Of a stretch of DNA of 64,000 nt, positions 35,201-50,529 are shown piece by piece. The translations under genes were made by a program, and so were the position numbers. Positions within the stretch are counted from its first letter, which is position 1. Each line of letters starts with the position of its first letter. This stretch comes from Camelus ferus (Eukaryota): contig NC_045720.1 in assembly GCF_009834535.1 (NCBI RefSeq), positions 930,001 to 994,000 of the forward strand. Reading direction: 5' to 3'. A model generated the notes under the pieces. It made no database searches, was not told the DNA's origin, and was given only the letters and a program-made list of their open reading frames with translations.

Positions 35201-38096
35201 ATGGGGGTGGGTTGCTGTTACCAGCTTGAGGACAGCAGCACCTCCGGAGCTCGGTACCAGCGTGTGGCCACGTACTCGGTCAGGGCCTGGCCCTCTGGTC
35301 CCTCAGGGAGGCTGCTGAGGGAGCGGGCGAGGCCAAAGTCACAGAGCTTCACCGAGCAGCTGGCGTCCAGGAGAACGTTGGACGGCTGGGGGAGAAGAGA
35401 TGGGTGGAGGGCTGATAAGGACCAGAGCTCAAGGACACTGGGGTGGGGGCACAGCTCAGGGGATGGGATGGGGCAGCACCTTCTGGTCCCGGTGGATAAC
35501 GCATCCCGAGTGGATGAACTTGGTGGCCCGCAGGAGCTGGTAGAAGATGTAGCGTTTGTGGGTGTCCTTCAGCACCGTGCCCTTGCAGATGACGGCATGC
35601 AGGTCAGTGTCTGGGGGGGGCATTCAGGTCAGTCTGGGGGGCTAGGGAAAGCAGGCAGGTCTGGCCCACTTTGGACCCTTGTGGGGGTTCCTCAGCCTGC
35701 CCACTGCCTACAGTCTCCAGGTCCCGCTGGCCACCCCCCGAGCCTTGTTCTGGGTGCAGGCAATGCCTGGGACCCTCTGCTGGCTTCTCAAGCCTGCCCG
35801 CCATCTGTTGGTACAGCAGTAAAAGTTTGTGAAATTACTTTTATACTTAATTTCATGTTGCCTTTGTTTTATAAAATGAATAGAAAAAGGAAAATGCATC
35901 TGCAAACAGTGACAGGGCAGGAGCCTCGCGGAGGGGTCAGGGTATTTGCCACCAGGCCTTGGGGGCAGACACTCTCCAGCTGTTTGTCCTGGGGCACAGG
36001 GACATGGCCCAAGCTGAGTGCACTGGGTACTGTGGGGACCCAAGCAGCAAAGGGACATGTGGAGGGAGTCAGGCCACTGGGGGCCAGGCCAGGGGAACCT
36101 GGGCTGGGGTCTGCGTGAGGCCTCACTCACCCATATACTCAAATACCAGGTAAATGTCCCTGTCATTCTCTGCCTGGATCACATCCAGGAGTCGGATGAT
36201 GTTGGGATGGTTCCCAAATTCCTGGGGAGAAAGTGGAGGGTGCTGTGCTCTGGGGATCAACGGGCCAGGCTTCCCCCTTATTCGGAGAGACGGCACCTGG
36301 AAAAGCAGGCAGGTGGCCTGGGCCACTCACCTGGAGCAGCATGATTTCCCGGAACGTTCTCTGGAAAGAAACAAAAACAGGAGTGTGGGTGCAGAGCAAG
36401 AAGGAAGCCCATATCTTGAGAGGAGCTGACAGGACTGATGCTCATCTCACACACTCACTGGACACAGGGTCGCCGAGGGCAGTGCTCTGAGAGATGCCAG
36501 AAACCTGCTGTGATGGGGCTTCAAGTTTCTGCTGAATCTTCCAGACGCATAGCAGCAGGAGGCCGCCCCTCCCCATGCCTCATCCTTTCCCACACCTCTT
36601 AACCACTTACTTACCTGGGCATCTGTCTTATCTCTAAAGGCATCAAAGATTTTCTTGATGGCCACAACCTCGCCAGTCCTCCGATCCACTGCCTTCCACA
36701 CGATGCCATAGGCCTGGGGAGGAGGGCAGTCAGCTTGCTGGGCACGGGGTTAGCCTCCTGCCCCATCATCCCCTGTCCACCAGACTGTCCCCTGCAGACA
36801 TGAGGCTCCTCCTTCCCACCCTGGCTCCTGAGAGGGGATACAGCATGGTGAGGGGCAAAGCCCCCCCCCGGGGGGCAGGCCAGGGACCCTAGTATGTTCC
36901 TAATAGGAAGCAAGGGGGGTTGAAGGAAAGAGAGGGGGCATCTGTGGAGGCTCCAGGAAGAAATGAGGTTGTAGATGGGAGCATGCTTCTGGACAGCAAC
37001 TGAAGCCTGTCCCTTCTCTGGACAGCCTTCCATCCTGGGTGCCCTCATCCCTCTCTGTCACATACCCTCATCTGGCCTATCAGCAAGTCCTGTTGGCTCC
37101 ACCTTCAGAATTCATCAGAATCCAACCACTTCCTACCATCTCTGCTGCCCCTACCCTGGTCTGAGCCTCTCGCACCTCTCGCCTGGATCTCCCTCACCCA
37201 CTCCCACTGTCCATACTCAACAGAGTGGGCAGGGGGAGCCTCATAAAGTGGTGCCAATGGCTGCTACCACTTCCCATGTCACCCACAATGGAAGCCAAAG
37301 CCCTCACAGTTGCCCCAAAGCCCCACACAAATGGACACTGCTCTTAGTCACTCCCATCCAGTCACATCAACTCTGCTGCTTGACCAACAGCCCAGTAGGT
37401 CCTTGCCTCAGGGCCTTTGCACATACTGTTTGCTCTGTCTGGACTGCTCTTTCTCCCCTCCCCCATTACCCACTTGCACACACCCACACACCTTCACACA
37501 TACACTCTCATAATCCCACAGGCTCTCACTCACTCACAATCACAAACATATACGGGCTCACACAAAGTTCTGGCCCCCACTCTATGCCCACCCCATTTTC
37601 TGGCTCAGGCCCTTCTTGGGTGGGGCCTGAGATCTGCCCTTCCCCCTCAACGACTGGTGTGCCCAGACTCCCTGGAGCATCGGTTAGCACTGGGAGAGGC
37701 AGCTCGGGAGCCGGGGACGTTGCGTGGGGACGGTTGGTGGATGGGACATCAAGATGGGACCTGAGACTCCTAGAGGCCCTGGCCTGAGACTCCCAGAGCC
37801 AGGTGACAAGTTCCCTGGGAGTTGGCACTGTTAGGGCCCTGTTGTAGGAAACAGGCACCGAGGGGCTCGATGGCTTGCCCGAGGCCACACTTGCAGCTCG
37901 TGGAGGAGGTAGGGCTCGAGTCCAGGAGTCCCCGGCAGTGTGGAAAGCAACAGTCCTCCGAGTGATTCTGCCCACACCCTGCAGGGGACCTAATCCCGCG
38001 GACGCCCGGGCTCCTCCCGGAACTCACCCCCTTCCCGAGCCGACGCTTGAGCAGGTATCGCTGGGCTACGTGATGGTCCACCTCAGCGGCGCACAT
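32234..38096 (-). CDS. MAPK15: Mitogen-activated protein kinase 15 (ERK7/ERK8), 551 aa
   Basis: 14 coding exons: 38028-38096, 36615-36713, 36331-36360, 36131-36221, 35480-35610, 35222-35385, 34888-35027, 34082-34139, 33569-33706, 33351-33456, 33047-33224, 32794-32927, 32578-32706, 32234-32422 (total 1656 nt). Motifs: GKGAYGIVWK, VAIKK, HRDQKPSN (characteristic of MAPK15), DFGLAR, TEY activation loop, [11 protein letters not shown]. Confidence 0.97.
37050..37450 (-). mobile_element. L2 fragment in MAPK15 intron 1
   Basis: TGTTGGCTCCACCTTCAGAAT...CCACTTCCTACCATCTCTGCTGC... L2 3' text. Confidence 0.6.
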
Positions 38097-38800
38097 GCCG
38101 GCTGGTGAGAGCCAGGAGTCCTCTGGACACCGGCTGGGCTCGAGCTGTTGAATCCAGTTGCCTTGGGAACCGGCGGCGGTGCCTCCCTTGCGCCTGCGCC
38201 TGCGCCGAGCGGGGCAGAGCGGGGTCTGCAGCCCAAGCCCCGCCCAAGCCCCGGCCCCCGAGGAGCTCCTCCCCACAGTCCCGCCCCAACGGCGCCGCCC
38301 CCGGTCGGCGCTGCCTTCCTCTCGATCCTTCCGCGTTAACCCCCACCAGAGCCCCCGAAGGTGCCCCTTGCCGCCCTCCGCCCCACCTCCGCCCACGGAG
38401 CCTTCCGCAACCTCCAGAACCTCCGTGCCAACTCCCGGCCTCTGCACGTGCGGTGCCCGCCGGCCGGGATGCCGTTTGCTCCCTCTGCCTTACTTCTTCC
38501 CAGTTTTGCGACGGGGGTGCCGATGGTTAGGGCGCCACTCGCAGACAGCCCCTCCGCTCTGGAGGTGTCTGGGGGCAGGGGCCGCGCCGTCCCCAGCGGG
38601 TGCGAGCGTCTGAACTGGGAGCTCCTGCTGAGGTGCCGCGAGGAGCCTGGGGGCAGTTCCAGGGCGGGTGGCTGGGAGCGCAAAGCTGGAGGAGGTGAGG
38701 GTTTACGAGACCGGCTGAGAAGGGCTGCTGTGCGCCGAGGTCAAGCGCCAGACGGCGATCAGAAAGCCAGGTAAAGGGGCTGCTGGTGGGCGAGGGTGTC
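37950..38800. promoter_or_regulatory. MAPK15 CpG-island promoter with RFX X-box and NRF1-like site
   Basis: CpG-rich; X-box-like GTTGCCTTGGGAAC at 38157-38170, ~60 nt upstream of the ATG; TGCGCCTGCGCCTGCGC (NRF1-like) at ~38189-38205. Confidence 0.7.
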
Positions 38801-43330: not shown

Positions 43331-44531
43331 GGACAGAGGAGCAGAAGGAAGTGGTGGAAGCACTGGTAACTGCTTGGCCAGGCTGCGGGGATGAGAGCTG
43401 AAGTCCCCCTGGAGGGTCCGACGTGAGGAGCGGAGCCATGAGCGGGTCTGAGCGGCCAGGAAAGCCAACGCGGGTGACCAGGAAGGCACAGCTGGGCGCC
43501 CCCGAGCCGGGGGCAGCAGGGACCGCAAGTGGACAGTGGGAGCCTTAGTAAACTCAGCGGAGGGGAGCCGGTCCCCAGGAGGGCAGTGGGCAGCGCTGAC
43601 CCCTAGCACACCGAGGATGTGGGACACCTGGCAGGCCAGCCCCTTTTCTCCCTGCCTCCCCCCAGGAGCCCCCAGCCAGAGGTCTCAGCCCTGCCATTCT
43701 GCCACTGAGAATGTGGCCAATAAGCAGAATTAGACCAAAACCAGTGAATTTCAGCAAAAAAGAATTCTGCAGAGTGAACTGCATTACATTTACTTCATTA
43801 TTGAATCAGTTGGTCAGTGGACGTTTGATTCACCCATGAGTCACGTTTGAACCTGTTCTTATGTGTTTCCTCTGGGGTCATGACTTCTCTCCAGCCCAGC
43901 CTTCTTGTGTTCATGTAGCCTTGCAGCAGGCATTTTGTCCAGGAGGTTTTATTTTCTCGTCAGTCGTTAGTTGACTATCAGTCTTGTTGCATGCAGTTGT
44001 AACCTTCAGCTTCGAGTACGTTGTCGACTTGGGGTATTTATTATGCCTTAGAGAAAAAGTGGGCCAAGTATTTAATTTTCAGTTGAACCATGAGAGATCT
44101 TGTGCCATTTGGGAGGCCTCACCCGAAAGACCCAGAGTTAGGGGGAGTGGGCATGTGGCAGCTCAACCCCCCAAGTTGAAACAATCTGGCCCCAACCTCC
44201 TGCCTCATCCATTACTAGCCTCCTTATAACCCTGGAGACCAGACTCACAGGGACCTCCGCCTCCCAGACTGCAGACTGTCACAGCCCTTGAGGGTGGGCC
44301 CTGCCCCCGCCCCTCCCTGTGTGTCACAGTCTGTGTGTGGGCCCCGCCCCTCAGTGTGGACATCTGAGTAGATATCGGCTGTGTCCCCATCTGTCAGAGT
44401 TGTCGCCCACTGCCCATCCTGTCTCCCTCGCAACCCCCACCCCCGACCCTGTGGGGGTGGACATGCTGCGTTCCCCCAGCACCTGGGTCTCCAATGTTGG
44501 GCCCTCCCATCTCCTGCCCCCAGCGTGGCCT

Positions 44532-46322
44532 ATGGACCCAGGTACCCCAGGGCACTCCAGGCACCTGCCTGGGCCCCCTCCCAGCAGGGCACCTTTGGGT
44601 GGTTATCTCTAGATCATGCGTCCAAACACTAAAATGGGGGTCTCGGAGGAGGCGTGCCTATCAGCTGGATGCCCCCTCACGGCTATCTCTTAGGGGCAGC
44701 TCGGAGCCAGCCTGTGGAGGTGGGCCCTGGCATTGCGATCGGGGCCTACGCAGGGCTCTGGACTCTGGGCATCGTCCTGTTTGTCATCCTCTTCCTCACA
44801 CACAGAGGTAGGTGGGCACCCCTGGCGGGGGCATGCCAGCCAACCTGGACCACAGCCTGAGATCCAGCCAGCTGGACTGACCCCTCAGGGAGGACCAGGG
44901 AGCCATGCCCACCAGCCCTGGGCTTCCACAATGCCCCTCCCCTGAAGCTGCTGCCCTGCCGAGCCTGAGCAGGCCAGAGCTGGGGTCACACAGCAGCAGC
45001 CCCGCGGAGCCCCAGCTGGCCCTCACGAACACCGCAGGGCTCCTGCTGGCTGGTCTCTGCCCCTGGGACTCGGGCGGCAGCGCTGCCCTGGCCCTCACTG
45101 CACTGCGTGTCCGGGGAGGGGTCTTCTTCCAGGGGCAGCCAAGGCTGCGAGGGCTGACGCACATCATGGCCTGGATCTGGTTATCCCACCTGGGGCTGAC
45201 TGGGAGCCTGGTGTGGGTCTGGCACCGGCTCCAAGGTACTTGGCTATGGAGGGGAGGCCACCTGAGGAAGGGTCCTTCCTGAACTTGAAGCCAAGGGCAG
45301 CTTAGGGGCAGGAGGGCAGAGGGAGACCTGCAGGCAGCACACAAACTGGAATATAGGGGAGGGGACACATTCGGGTCCTGTCCAGGGCCCAGAGAACAGC
45401 CAGGTCTGGGATCTCCAGGGCTTGACCTCAGCCAGAGGACACACTGGACAAACACACTCTCCTGGACCCCACTCACATTCCTGCCTCTCCTCCTCTTCGC
45501 CATGGGGATCGCCACCAATGCTGTGCTTCTGATCAAGGACAAGGTACTAGGGTGGGGCTGGGGCACACCCTTGTCTGGCCACTGCTCAGGCCACCTCTGT
45601 GGGTCTCAGGCTCCCACCAGCGTTGAACTCCAAGGACAGGGTCTCTGGCGTCACCTGAACCCACGCCCCACTCAAAGGTCCAACTGGCCTTGGTAGGTGG
45701 AATGGTCGTGAGCACTGGCCCTGTACTGGCCACAGGGTGCCATGGAGTGGGATTCAGTTATGGCAGCTGGTTCCTCCCTTTGCTCCAGGGCACAGGGCAG
45801 GGACAGGAGGGGACTCAGCAAGAGGCAGTGCACACAGTGGGAAGAGCCTACCAAGGTCCAAGTCACAGCCCCAGTGCTTTCAGGAGTCCTTGGACCACTC
45901 ACTCTGTGCCTCAGTTTCTCCATCTGGGAAAGGGGAGCAGGGGCTGCTGGAAGTGCTCACCCTAGGTTCAGACACACAGCCCAGCCCTCCTGAGGAGGAG
46001 AGCTCACCCCAAGTCTCCGAAGCTCAGTAGAGAGGGCTGCAAGGCACAGAGAACAGCAAGATGGGCCAGAAGGTGTGCCCTCGGGCAGCCTGCTGGGGTT
46101 GGGGACGCGGCCCAGTGGTGAGAGCAACATCCCAGGAACGGGCCAGATAGGACCTCATGCTGCAGCCTTCTGGGTCCACGGCAGGCCCTCAGCAGAGAGG
46201 GGCGGAGGGGGAGGGGACGCGACATGGTGTGGGGGAGGGGCAGCCTTGGCAGAAGCTGAATAGACTGCTGGCGCCTCTTCCTCCCAGTGTCTTTCCAGCT
46301 CAGCGTCCCGGCCAAGAGGTGA
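44532..46322 (+). CDS. Putative novel 5-exon multi-pass membrane protein, 156 aa
   Basis: Exons 44532-44541, 44694-44807, 45038-45235, 45419-45543 and 46299-46322. All four introns are GT-AG with matching phases (1,1,1,0); 471 nt with no internal stop; 3-4 hydrophobic segments. No family recognised. Confidence 0.55.
45895..45940 (+). mobile_element. MIR core fragment in intron 4 of the putative membrane gene
   Basis: CTCTGTGCCTCAGTTTCTCCATCTGGGAAAGGGG. Other MIR cores lie near 2085-2175, 37780-37880 and 47300-47345. Confidence 0.65.
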
Positions 46323-46599
46323 GTGACCCCTGCAGACCCTCCCGAGCCTGAGTCTGTGGGGGATGTAGTCGATCTCTGGAGGGACAAAGACCACCGCGCC
46401 ATTCACGAAGAGAGACGGAAAGGACCCCAGGGGTGGGGCGAAGTATCGCAAGAAACACCTGGCTTTGAGTCTCGGCCCTTGGAGGTGAATTTTATCTCCC
46501 GTGGGCGCCAGTGAGACCTGGTGGACACGATACACCCTATCCCCAACACAATGAGGGAAAGGCCCCAGAGGTCTGGAGTAGGGGCGCGGCTCAGCCCGC

Positions 46600-47330
46600 C
46601 TCCAGGCCGGGCACCCTCCTCGTCCCACGCGCCCTTTAGCCTTGGGCGCCGAACAAGCCCGAGGAAGCAGAGGAGACAAAGTCCCCTCCTGCCGCTAATC
46701 CCCGCGGGTCAGAGGCGAAGCCGAGAAAGCCGCGGCCGGGCTCCAGCGGGAGCGCAGAGGTGGAAGGTCCCGGCGGGGCAGGGGCGGACTGGGAGGGGGG
46801 CCGGGGGGAGGGCCAGGGGGAGGGGCGGGGAGGGGTGGAGCCGAGGCTGGGCGTGGCCCGGGCAGGACCAGGGCTCGGGTTGGGGTGGGGGCGCGGCTTC
46901 CCCCTGGGCTCCGCGATGGAGTCCACCGTGATTGCGTAATCCGGAATTGCAGAGCTGGGAAGAAGGACGTCTCGAGGAACCTGGAGACCGAGGAGAACAA
47001 GACGCTCGCCACATCTCTTTTAGGGGGGAGGCATTATGAGCTTTAACGCGAGGACAAGTCGCCAAGAATTCCGGGAGGCCGGGACGGCTTAAAACGTAAA
47101 AACCTCCGTCCATCGGGTGCCTCACTTCGAAACAAACTAAAAGGCCAAGGTCGACCCAGACACTCCCGCGACAGATGTGTGCTGAGCACAAGCCCGGAGG
47201 GGCAGGGGCGACTTGCAGCCGCGGCGTGGTCTGGGAGGGCACTGGGTCCGAGACTGCTGAGGACCGGCCCGGCCATGTGAGCAGGTCCCCATCGCTCGCA
47301 GTCTCAGTTTCTCAGTCCGTTAAATAGGGA
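46600..47330. promoter_or_regulatory. Orphan CpG island between the novel membrane gene and CCDC166
   Basis: CpG-rich, with a G-tract/GC-box cluster at 46770-46900 and the bZIP-type near-palindrome ATTGCGTAAT at 46931-46940. Confidence 0.55.
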
Positions 47331-48702
47331 CAGTATCCTCAGGCGGGCCTGAGGGTGGAGAGCGCGGGTAGCCCCTGGGGGCAGAGAGATCCTGGTCTGG
47401 AATGCCAGGCCTGGAGAAGGAGACAGCCCACATGGGCACGGTGGAGCCCCCTGCAGGGTCACGGGAGATGCTTCTCCTGGTTCTACTTGGTCTTTTCCCA
47501 GTCTTCTGTAAGAAGCCTGTATCATTTAAGGCCAACATTCATGCTGTTTTAGTTTATGAATCAACATTTCTTTTAAATTTTTAATGTTAAAGCAAACGGG
47601 AATTCTGCATTGTCTTTCATGCATTGTAAAAAAAAATTTTTTTTTTTGCAAGGGGGAAAATACCTCGTGTTCCTAATTTTAAGAGGCTCTGCCACATCTT
47701 TAGGGCAGGTGTAGCAAGGCCAGGCACAGGAGCGAAGCCCAGGCTCTGAAATCAACCTCCTAAGATAGTTTTCAAGACAAGCCTTCCTACAAATGTTTTT
47801 TCCTAAGCTGTGCTCCGCACAAAGTTACAAGTCAATAATCTTGAATCTGTTCATATTGTAGCAAATGTGGACAGACCTGGACAGAAACGCAACTATATGA
47901 TGACAGGGCCAAATTCGTTGTAGACTTGTTTCACTGCAAAGGCTGTCTGGAGGCACCTGTTCCAGAGGCATCTGACAGGATGGGAGGCTGGACCTGGCTG
48001 CTGGCGACTGAAAAAAGGGAGGGTTTAGGATGTTGCTTCCCCAATATCAACAGCAAAAAGATCCATAGCCAAACCCTGAAGCATCACCTACCCCTGCCCC
48101 CCGACTCCACCATGCCGGCCTGCTGGGAAGGGAAAGAAGCGAATCACGGCAGGTGGGTGGGATGAGCTGAACAGATGACCCCTGTGCGGGCATCGGACGG
48201 AGCCTCTGAGAGGAGATCCCAGAGAGAAACACACTGGACAAAGGGATGACATCCAAATGGGCCCGACCTCCCCAGGAGCCCTCACCCCACGAAGGCCTCC
48301 AGAAGGAAGCAATCACATAGAAGTGCTTCAAGGAAAACTAGGGTCCCCTGAGAGAGGAAAAGATGTGGGGAAGAGCTCTGTCCTGACAACAAATAGGGAG
48401 ATTTCACACGTGTGTGTGGTGCGAGAGGACAGGAACTTGGCGAAACTCCCCACATGGGGATGACTGGGTGTAGAGGCCAATGGTGGACAGATTGCAAAGG
48501 GTCCAAGTCTGGCACGTGGAGAGTGGGGACTACTGCCGTGGCTGGGTCTGTTAGATTCCGGAGCAAGTCCAGCATCATCTGCCGGGGGGAAGCCGAAGTC
48601 CTGCCCATCTGGGATCCACCTTCTTGCAGGACACGCACACAGGCCGTCACTCACCGACTTCCAGTGAGGGGGCTGGGGGAAGGGAAGAAGGGGACTCGGG
48701 CC

Positions 48703-48762
48703 GTTGCCCAAGCAACGAGGTGGGAGTGGGGGAGGGCGACTAAGTTCTGTTTCCATGGAGAC
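48703..48762. promoter_or_regulatory. Tandem RFX X-boxes upstream of CCDC166
   Basis: GTTGCCCAAGCAAC (48703-48716) and GTTTCCATGGAGAC (48749-48762), ~230-290 nt upstream of the ATG; both near-consensus 14-bp X-boxes. Confidence 0.65.
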
Positions 48763-48960
48763 TGTGCAGGCTGAACGGCAACACTACTAAAGGTGGTCCA
48801 GACGGTGATGGAAGGCCAAGGAGCCCACTAGTAAAGGCTGGCGACGATGCCCTGACCCCTGATTGATCCCAAACCCCTGATTCTGCCTCCCCCAATCTCG
48901 TGACCCTGAGACGCGTCCAACTCCGCCAGAATATTCGGGCTGGGGGAGGGGAAGGGCTGA

Positions 48961-50529
<1,569 letters not shown>

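Follow-up and report, generated by a model that had tools for sequence, protein, structure and literature searches.

The closest described relatives of the locus studied here are protein models from only a handful of annotated mammals. RefSeq labels those of ferret (LOC101680073, Mustela putorius furo), European mink (LOC131827781, Mustela lutreola), tamandua (LOC143686180, Tamandua tetradactyla) and banteng (LOC133260140, Bos javanicus), all found by profile search, as "uncharacterized protein LOC..." and nothing more, and further models exist for Arctic fox (CAK7289338.1, Vulpes lagopus), ibex (KAM7236818.1, Capra ibex) and wild camel (EPY73921.1, Camelus ferus). The LOC101680073-like proteins are all unnamed, unassigned to any family and unpublished, and a search of the literature for the LOC identifiers found no papers. 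The original prediction, a five-exon gene for a 156-aa multi-pass membrane protein read from camel DNA, had called the gene unannotated; it is not wholly so, models being available in RefSeq or GenBank for these seven mammals.

Database queries with single exons, stop-free frames of the window and ortholog protein identifiers returned no recognizable human, mouse, other primate or rodent protein, many of the matches being open reading frames (ORFs) on contigs of unknown species. In human, ZNF707, CCDC166 and MAPK15 are among the 34 contiguous protein-coding genes that one paper describes at 8q24.3; their membership of that set, irrespective of order, fits nothing being annotated between CCDC166 and MAPK15. 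In general plan, the nearest known proteins are small accessory or oligomerizing membrane proteins with a glycine zipper, which share with the orphan protein a similar size, few transmembrane (TM) helices, GxxxGxxxG in TM1 and a short charged cytosolic tail. The likeness to MAP17/PDZK1IP1 (PF15807) is one of kind only, with no detectable homology and no fold match.

Position of the locus and its relation to existing models

The window, a stretch of 64,000 nucleotides from Camelus ferus (contig NC_045720.1, positions 930,001 to 994,000), was analyzed in its own coordinates, with the following features at and downstream of the orphan gene:

44463–44465, forward strand: upstream in-frame ATG, a possible alternative start, 23 codons before the conserved ATG
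44532–44541, forward strand: exon 1, ATG GAC CCA G, with the conserved ATG and donor CAG/GTAC
44694–44807, forward strand: exon 2, encoding TM1 and its G-x3-G-x3-G motif, both borders in phase 1
45038–45118, forward strand: 5′ extension of exon 3 in the original prediction, 27 codons (a "weaker TM"), not conserved
45119–45235, forward strand: conserved core of exon 3, encoding TM2 with LTH..AW.W...LGLT..LVWVWHR
45419–45543, forward strand: exon 4, encoding TM3, with acceptor CTCCAG/G and donor AG/GTAC, both present in all 8 sequences compared
45537–45538, forward strand: camel-only 1-nt deletion in a G run, ending exon 4 in phase 0 instead of 1
45880–45935, no strand assigned: intron 4 repeat core resembling MIR, conserved to the same degree as the exons
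46288–46318, forward strand: exon 5 in its ortholog form, V-SFQLSVPAK, out of frame in camel through the deletion
46299–46318, forward strand: exon 5 from the originally predicted acceptor TTTCCAG/CTC, which restores the conserved frame in camel
46320–46322, forward strand: originally predicted TGA, overlapping the conserved donor GT at 46319–46320
46953–47046, forward strand: candidate for exon 6, following acceptor AATTGCAG/A and encoding a tail rich in Lys and Glu, stop TAA at 47044–47046
48991–50529, forward strand: DUF4515 (CCDC166-type) domain from a Pfam scan of the window

Fox and ferret also have the orphan gene between MAPK15 and CCDC166, as does ibex, where the locus ends before CCDC166. 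The gene lies head-to-head (divergent) with MAPK15 and upstream of CCDC166 on the same strand. The 5′ end of fox MAPK15 aligns to 37216–38302 of the window and fox CCDC166 to 48843–50523. In fox and ibex, a Pkinase gene lies on the minus strand upstream of the orphan gene; ferret has a DUF4515 (CCDC166-type) gene downstream of it, and fox an unannotated 442-aa gene there that aligns with the CCDC166 of the window. We conclude that the LOC101680073-like models, placed next to MAPK15, CCDC166 or both in these three species, are the same gene as the camel locus: the TM1/TM2/TM3 core and, apart from the exon 3 acceptor and the end of exon 4, exons 1–6 are alike, with 44–70% protein identity to the camel exons. 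The comparison documents orthology, synteny, conserved splice sites and recurrent lineage-specific lesions of the orphan gene. Taken whole, the proposal that 44.46–47.05 kb contains the camel member of an unnamed orthologous group in placental mammals, a three-TM gene under weak constraint, appears probable, if well short of certain.

A search with the camel exon 3 peptide recovered, together with orthologs, EPY73921.1 (hypothetical protein CB1_002454002) of the same species at 100% identity. This model spans exons 2 and 3, identical wherever the exons match, reads part of intron 2 as coding and lacks exons 1, 4, 5 and 6; its first exon maps to 38523–38696, some 6 kb ahead of exon 1, a short way beyond the alignment of the fox MAPK15 5′ end. 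It is a mis-model of the orphan gene.

Exon structure in camel and other mammals

The five exons and junction strings of the original prediction were reproduced in full, with GT/AG borders, a summed length of 10 + 114 + 198 + 125 + 24 = 471 nt, no internal stop in the spliced frame, and a 156-aa product identical to the one quoted; its report of an open frame upstream of exon 1 was likewise correct, the in-frame ATG being at 44463. We compared eight sequences, camel and seven other mammalian ones, including those designated L003, L007, L008 and L009. Apart from an ambiguous exon 3 acceptor, conservation extends to the borders of exons 1–4 and to the donor of exon 5, and the donors are weak, with AG/GTAC occurring three times. 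The conserved ATG of exon 1 is present in seven of the eight (GTG in ferret), and the GT donor of this exon is deleted in both caprine sequences. Fox also has an in-frame upstream ATG, the mustelid RefSeq models begin at this position, and a 1-nt gap interrupts the upstream frame in ruminant sequences and L003. Exon 2 has the acceptor YTCTYAG/GGG and the donor AG/GTAGGT (GTAGCT in ibex) in all eight sequences. The RefSeq isoforms of banteng leave exons 1 and 2 out of the coding sequence.

For exon 3, camel offers candidate acceptors at 45038, 45119 and 45133. From the originally predicted acceptor at 45038 the frame holds in only three of the eight sequences and the protein sequence is unconserved; tamandua isoform X2 carries a comparable optional insert, and 45038–45118 is probably intronic or part of an alternative isoform. 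Of the four TM segments first proposed, three are conserved; the weaker fourth lies in these first 27 codons, unconserved in sequence and not consistently in frame in orthologs. The AG/GG acceptor at 45117–45118 is common to the artiodactyl sequences and has no pyrimidine tract; the carnivore acceptor, GTCAG/, reads GTCCG in camel. A stronger acceptor at 45132/45133 would shift the frame, which would then meet a stop where exon 4 begins, as judged by hand translation.

Intron phases are 1,1,1,1,2 in the LOC101680073-like family, while camel exon 4, as originally predicted, ends in phase 0, owing to one G fewer at its end: at 45537–45538 camel reads AAGGAC, six of the seven others AAGGGA/G, and ibex AATGGA. 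The missing G puts the ortholog acceptor at 46288 out of frame, so that camel needs another exon 5 acceptor, and only 46299 restores the frame. From the ATG to the stop of exon 6 the camel frame is open only with acceptor 46299 or with the missing G restored; acceptor 46288 gives a shifted tail. The ortholog acceptor of exon 5, YAG/TGTC, occurs in six of the eight sequences and its donor, AAGAG/GTGAGT, in five (GTGAAA in fox), both sites being absent in L003 and L009. The TGA at 46320–46322 overlaps this conserved donor and would be read only if intron 5 were retained; the ortholog models splice on to a further exon. Judged from the aligned sequences, the C-terminus would likewise run on into a sixth exon, for which 46953–47046 is the candidate, its TAA aligning with the TAA of ibex and L008 and the TGA of ferret. 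An intact camel product is expected to be about 159 aa long; the long form of exon 3 would bring it to 186 aa. Within intron 4, the repeat core at 45880–45935, which resembles the MIR consensus, borders an alternative exon of a banteng isoform.

The original prediction had also placed an X-box-like element at 44421–44434 on the forward strand and suggested a link to cilia. Measured against the consensus GTNRCC N0-3 RGYAAC, this element has two mismatches to GTNRCCNNRGYAAC, a class with 99 sites in the window versus 98 expected, and it is unconserved in the five further sequences that align there. An X-box at chance level gives no support to a ciliary role. A perfect X-box lies 288 nt upstream of the CCDC166 ATG.

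Selection, lineage lesions and competing explanations

No stop interrupts the conserved frame in 112 codons across the eight sequences. Pooled dN/dS was 0.61 in this frame, compared with 0.87–0.96 in three of the five other frames and 0.65 in one antisense frame. Under GY+F3X4, omega was 0.51 for all eight sequences (likelihood ratio versus omega = 1 of 13.7, p = 2e-4) and 0.50 for the five least damaged (p = 0.002), two of which, the caprines, still carry lesions. The claimed frame gave the lowest dN/dS in exons 2, 3, 5 and 6 each taken alone: 0.49 in exon 2 (0.95–1.29 in shifted frames; no stops), 0.53 in the exon 3 core (no stops), 0.21 in exon 5 in the ortholog frame, and 0.60 in exon 6 (0.95–1.02 shifted; no stops); exon 4, at 0.75, had the weakest frame signal, almost none. 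Exons diverge less than introns (JC distances of 0.13–0.15 versus 0.27–0.39) and have a 3–4 times lower density of indels, although in seven of the eight indel events within exons the length is not divisible by 3. A merely neutral rate for the exons was rejected, since divergence is twice as high in the well-aligned intron segments next to them. Purifying selection on the orphan gene is frame-specific but weak, with omega about 0.5.

Damage recurs across lineages. Ibex has a 1-nt deletion, and the L003/L009 clade has 2-nt and 1-nt deletions and has lost splice sites of exons 5 and 6, with two more deletions in exon 2 of L009. Such lesions accord with a patchy mixture of retention and decay among mammals; the original prediction had suggested a gene kept in some of them and lost in humans.

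A spliced frame that is open by chance could be imagined in DNA of 62% GC where each strand carries long ORFs (one of them, antisense at 44796–45566, has 256 aa), given free choice of GT/AG sites, and two of the original junction choices (45038 and 46299) do differ from the conserved ones. Yet seven other mammalian sequences, as well as RefSeq models made independently, show the same exons, splice sites and stop-free frame, and the selection signal is specific to that frame at p = 2e-4; we regard this explanation as exceedingly improbable and effectively refuted by the cross-species data. It is also quite improbable, if a little less so, that the exons are upstream non-coding or uORF-bearing parts of one long unit running into CCDC166. 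The two lie on the same strand, 2–4.5 kb separating the exons from the CCDC166 ATG, and neither AATAAA nor ATTAAA, the canonical poly(A) signals, occurs between 46300 and 48900, the 2.6 kb downstream. Camel reproductive-tract RNA runs, of just 0.7–1.0 Gb, contain 63–66% of the locus by word shares, which are blind to junctions; for runs so small this counts in favor of the orphan gene as such. They also contain 85–97% of the "intergenic" stretch 47450–48650, above the gene body share, which suits one long unit. However, ferret has the orphan gene and CCDC166 called separately, the former with its own terminal exon, the X-box near the CCDC166 ATG suggests that CCDC166 has a promoter of its own, and frame-specific selection is unexpected in 5′ UTR exons.

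More weight falls to the reading, unlikely but by no means negligible, that the locus in camel, and perhaps in most artiodactyls, is a transcribed relic (a poorly spliced noncoding RNA or a unitary pseudogene) whose open frame survives from an ancestor that was coding. The camel-only deletion points this way, as do replacements of conserved residues (PWLWE to PRLRG in the loop before TM2, where the LOC101680073-like models have W/W/E for the R/R/G of camel, and ID-R to TN-T), the frameshifts and lost splice sites that arose separately in ibex, the caprines and the L003/L009 clade, and the lack of a canonical poly(A) signal noted above. The RNA contigs cover introns and flanks as much as exons, so the word shares show no discrete spliced mRNA. 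Camel also has the highest branch pN/pS, 0.70, a value that rests on 39 substitutions and is inseparable from 0.5. Against decay, no stop interrupts the conserved frame in any of the six camel exons, exon 6 is open to the ancestral stop, a frame-restoring acceptor lies only 11 nt downstream, and the deletion falls in a G run, in an assembly with many notes of single-base frameshifts, which are suspected errors; it could itself be an assembly error. If it is, or if acceptor 46299 is used, the camel protein would still be made; the odds between this and a protein with a shifted C-terminal tail are roughly even, and the camel copy may be slightly damaged.

The predicted protein and its significance

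Under the favored proposal of an orthologous three-TM gene, the gene in carnivores, tamandua and the ruminant L007, whose contig reaches exons 1–5, would encode a protein of 125–190 aa in which a short N-terminus leads into three transmembrane helices, exons 5 and 6 supplying a short charged tail. TM1 would be a glycine zipper (GxxxGxxxG), TM2 would be rich in Trp and His, and the Pro-containing TM3 would be the least constrained. Camel retains this core, from the TM1 glycine motif through the TM2 motif to TM3, and has lost the W-L-W-E before TM2. AlphaFold2 predicted three long helices for the mink ortholog (pLDDT 70–78; pTM 0.35), and Foldseek against the AFDB clusters gave this model no TM-score above 0.29. 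The original prediction had recognized no family, and we found no Pfam family or fold match either: the camel exon ORFs matched nothing in Pfam, the orthologs matched MAP17 (PF15807) alone at E = 0.77 (10 bits versus a cutoff of 29.6), and an ESM Atlas feature search with camel exon 3 and the mink protein returned only bacterial matches, all below threshold. A search with the exon 4 ORF for independent camelid copies gave only two matches, both non-camelid; of two metagenome scans with DNA patterns, one was empty and the other gave 20 chance matches on contigs otherwise unrelated to the locus.

The product is presumably a small integral membrane protein in which the TM1 glycine zipper and a polar and aromatic face of TM2 would probably pack helix against helix, either within an oligomer or with another membrane protein that it serves as an accessory subunit. 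It may be made at low levels, mainly in reproductive tissue, and would be dispensable enough for repeated decay. We put forward more tentatively, and at somewhat less than even chances, the broader idea of an ancient three-helix glycine-zipper microprotein gene, at least as old as the boreoeutherian-xenarthran split and with no detectable relatives, that still works in carnivores, tamandua and possibly camel, with reproductive tissue as the likeliest site, and has been repeatedly lost or silenced; such a gene would have escaped notice because human and mouse have no annotated copy.

The orphan gene has no bearing on a long-standing question. For annotation, the analysis corrects the wild-camel model EPY73921.1 and provides a conserved exon structure that pipelines can use in other mammals. 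If truly coding, the gene would add to the mammalian gene set an uncharacterized, fold-orphan small membrane protein of a family invisible to human- and mouse-centered work, and, with several independent lesions among eight sequences, would offer a clean natural experiment in repeated gene decay.

An open spliced frame and its relatives

Between MAPK15 and CCDC166, the original prediction joined five plus-strand segments into a gene for a 156-aa membrane protein. Upon re-splicing, both the segments and the product were matched exactly; with AG/GT borders throughout, they splice in the 44421-46322 region into a 471-nt frame free of stops, and the open frame proposed 5′ of exon 1 was borne out, with an ATG at 44463.

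Exons as originally predicted (window coordinates)
44532-44541, plus strand, exon 1, AG/GT borders
44694-44807, plus strand, exon 2, AG/GT borders
45038-45235, plus strand, exon 3, AG/GT borders
45419-45543, plus strand, exon 4, AG/GT borders
46299-46322, plus strand, exon 5, including the TGA

Because regional GC is 62% and both strands carry long ORFs, a spliced ORF alone proves little here, and a comparative test was therefore needed. The exon 3 peptide, used as query in an exhaustive HMMER search, returned EPY73921.1 (Camelus ferus) at 100% identity and a few relatives. The first exon of EPY73921.1 maps at 100% identity to 38523-38696, approximately 6 kb 5′ of exon 1 and just beyond the alignment of the fox MAPK15 5′ end; the model is chimeric, made up of unrelated pieces. 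A profile search matched RefSeq entries named "uncharacterized protein" in Mustela putorius furo (LOC101680073), Mustela lutreola (LOC131827781), Bos javanicus (LOC133260140) and Tamandua tetradactyla (LOC143686180), GenBank hypothetical proteins of Vulpes lagopus, Capra ibex and Gulo gulo, and many Logan/ENA contig ORFs; none of the matches was recognisable as a human, other primate or rodent protein. No mention of the LOC identifiers was found in the literature, and the statement that the product belongs to no recognisable family held up against Pfam, PDB-independent fold clusters and ESM Atlas clusters.

The fox (L001), ibex (L002) and ferret (L006) loci are arranged as in camel: in fox and ibex the gene is preceded by a protein-kinase gene on the opposite strand, in ferret it is followed by a DUF4515 (CCDC166) gene, and a downstream 442-aa gene in fox aligns to the window's CCDC166. 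DUF4515 spans 48991-50529 of the window, whose MAPK15 5′ end falls near 37.2-38.3 kb (fox alignment 37216-38302). At human 8q24.3, a passage in one study describes 34 contiguous protein-coding genes including CCDC166 and MAPK15 (PMC9741223). Four more contigs were used, two ruminant- or caprine-looking (L007 and L008) and two from closely related, slowly evolving species (L003 and L009).

In an eight-sequence MAFFT alignment, JC divergence was 0.13-0.15 in exons versus 0.27-0.39 in well-aligned intron segments, and indels were 3-4 times rarer in exons than in introns. Over the 112 aligned codons of exons 2-4, the claimed frame had 0 stops in any sequence, compared with 2 to 32 in the other five frames (six-sequence alignment). 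Pooled NG86 dN/dS was 0.61 for the claimed frame and 0.87-0.96 for three other frames, the exception being the antisense frame with the same third positions (0.65). A dN/dS below 1, proposed originally as a check, was recovered in the claimed frame with IQ-TREE (GY+F3X4; omega 0.51), the likelihood-ratio test statistic against omega=1 being 12.7 for six sequences and 13.7 for eight (p=2e-4); the five least damaged sequences by themselves gave an omega of 0.50 (p=0.002). Exon by exon, dN/dS was lowest in the claimed frame for exons 2, 3, 5 and a candidate exon 6, while exon 4 (0.75) had little frame signal. We conclude that purifying selection has acted on this family at the protein level, but weakly. 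The open spliced frame is confirmed and is not due to chance. As had been proposed, the gene family exists, is an orphan and is retained patchily; the exon model needs correcting, and the gene is not wholly unannotated, since databases already list the uncharacterised LOC entries.

Corrections to the exon model

Three changes are needed, affecting exon 3, exon 5 and an added sixth exon. The ATG at 44532 is kept in seven of the eight sequences, the ferret having GTG; its RefSeq model begins at an upstream ATG. In-frame upstream ATGs also occur in camel and fox, and this frame is broken in the ruminant sequences and L003. Acceptor 45038 adds 27 codons of unconserved sequence, in frame in just three of the eight, and the conserved core of exon 3 starts from 45119 (GGGGAG/GG), a site common to the artiodactyl sequences that has no pyrimidine tract. 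The carnivore acceptor reads GTCAG where camel has GTCCG, and by hand translation a better-looking acceptor at 45132/45133 would shift the frame into a stop codon where exon 4 begins. Of the three clear and one weaker TM segments first described, the weaker one falls within the unconserved 27 codons, so the conserved protein has three TM helices.

Camel is one base shorter at its exon 4 end than each of the seven other sequences, whose exon finishes in phase 1 and reads ATCAAGGG-R/ATCAGGGG-A in six and CTCAATGGA in ibex; camel has ATCAAGGAC, with one G missing at 45537-45538. The deletion lies in a G run, and an assembly error is a serious possibility. Acceptor 46288, used for exon 5 in the orthologs, gives a frameshifted tail in camel, and the originally chosen 46299, by dropping a further 11 bases, restores the frame. 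The TGA first taken as the stop overlaps a conserved AAGAG/GTGAGT donor from which the ortholog models splice to another exon. The camel acceptor of this candidate exon 6 is AATTGCAG, just before 46953, and the conserved frame continues to a TAA at 47044-47046, a position at which the ibex and ferret frames also stop. The predicted camel product has 159 aa with exon 3 starting at 45119 and 186 aa with exon 3 starting at 45038, or is a 155-aa frameshifted form; the camel copy may be defective.

Transcription and noncoding elements

Camel reproductive-system RNA-seq runs (0.7-1.0 Gb each) contained 63-66% of sampled words from 44400-46400, far above what exons alone would give, and 85-97% of those from a control taken as intergenic (47450-48650), more than for the gene body. 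In those samples transcription therefore extends over the whole stretch to CCDC166, with introns retained at least in part, and these word shares do not show a discrete spliced mRNA. The 47450-48650 RNA is possibly read-through into CCDC166 or an unannotated long transcript, and no AATAAA or ATTAAA occurs between 46300 and 48900. In intron 5, just 5′ of candidate exon 6, a block with G-runs and very high GC and CpG content (46560-46900) could be an internal promoter. An intron 4 repeat core (45880-45960), which we take to be MIR-like, is conserved like the exons (JC 0.16); the alternative exon of banteng isoform P0014 starts directly after it and looks like MIR exonisation.

The X-box-like site originally proposed at 44421-44434 has two consensus mismatches, belongs to a class found 99 times versus 98 expected, and is unconserved; the suggested cilia link does not extend beyond the neighbouring genes. 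The sole zero-mismatch RFX X-box in the window (GTTGCCCAAGCAAC, 48703-48716) lies 288 nt 5′ of the CCDC166 ATG (48991), and a search for the strict pattern at the corresponding place in fox and ferret gave no match. A palindromic X-box-like site with one mismatch (GTTGCCTTGGGAAC, 38157-38170) is inside the stretch aligned to the fox MAPK15 5′ end.

Predicted protein and lineage-specific decay

For the mink ortholog, AlphaFold2 with a shallow alignment produced three long helices (pLDDT 70-78; pTM 0.35), the N-terminus and tail being disordered. TM1 has a conserved GxxxGxxxG glycine zipper, TM2 is rich in Trp, His and Thr, and the tail in Lys and Glu; these conserved features would fit a small integral membrane protein that would act through tight helix packing, as a homo-oligomer or else as an accessory subunit.

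Lesions are spread across lineages, and of the eight indel events in exons, seven have lengths not divisible by three. In the two caprine sequences a deletion has removed the GT donor of exon 1, and ibex exon 4 has a 1-nt deletion absent from the related L008. L003 (1417-1990) and L009 have in common a 2-nt deletion at the exon 2 end and a compensating 1-nt deletion 20-odd nt into exon 3, regaining frame after six codons; both have lost the exon 5 AG and GT and the exon 6 AG, and L009 has two more exon 2 deletions. An in-frame 15-nt deletion in ferret (within L006 4628-4741) takes out the conserved P-W-L-W-E before TM2, which the European mink ortholog retains. Banteng RefSeq isoforms begin 3′ of exon 2, and pN/pS is highest in the camel lineage (0.70, about 39 changes). 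This pattern of lesions is that of a dispensable gene lost repeatedly.
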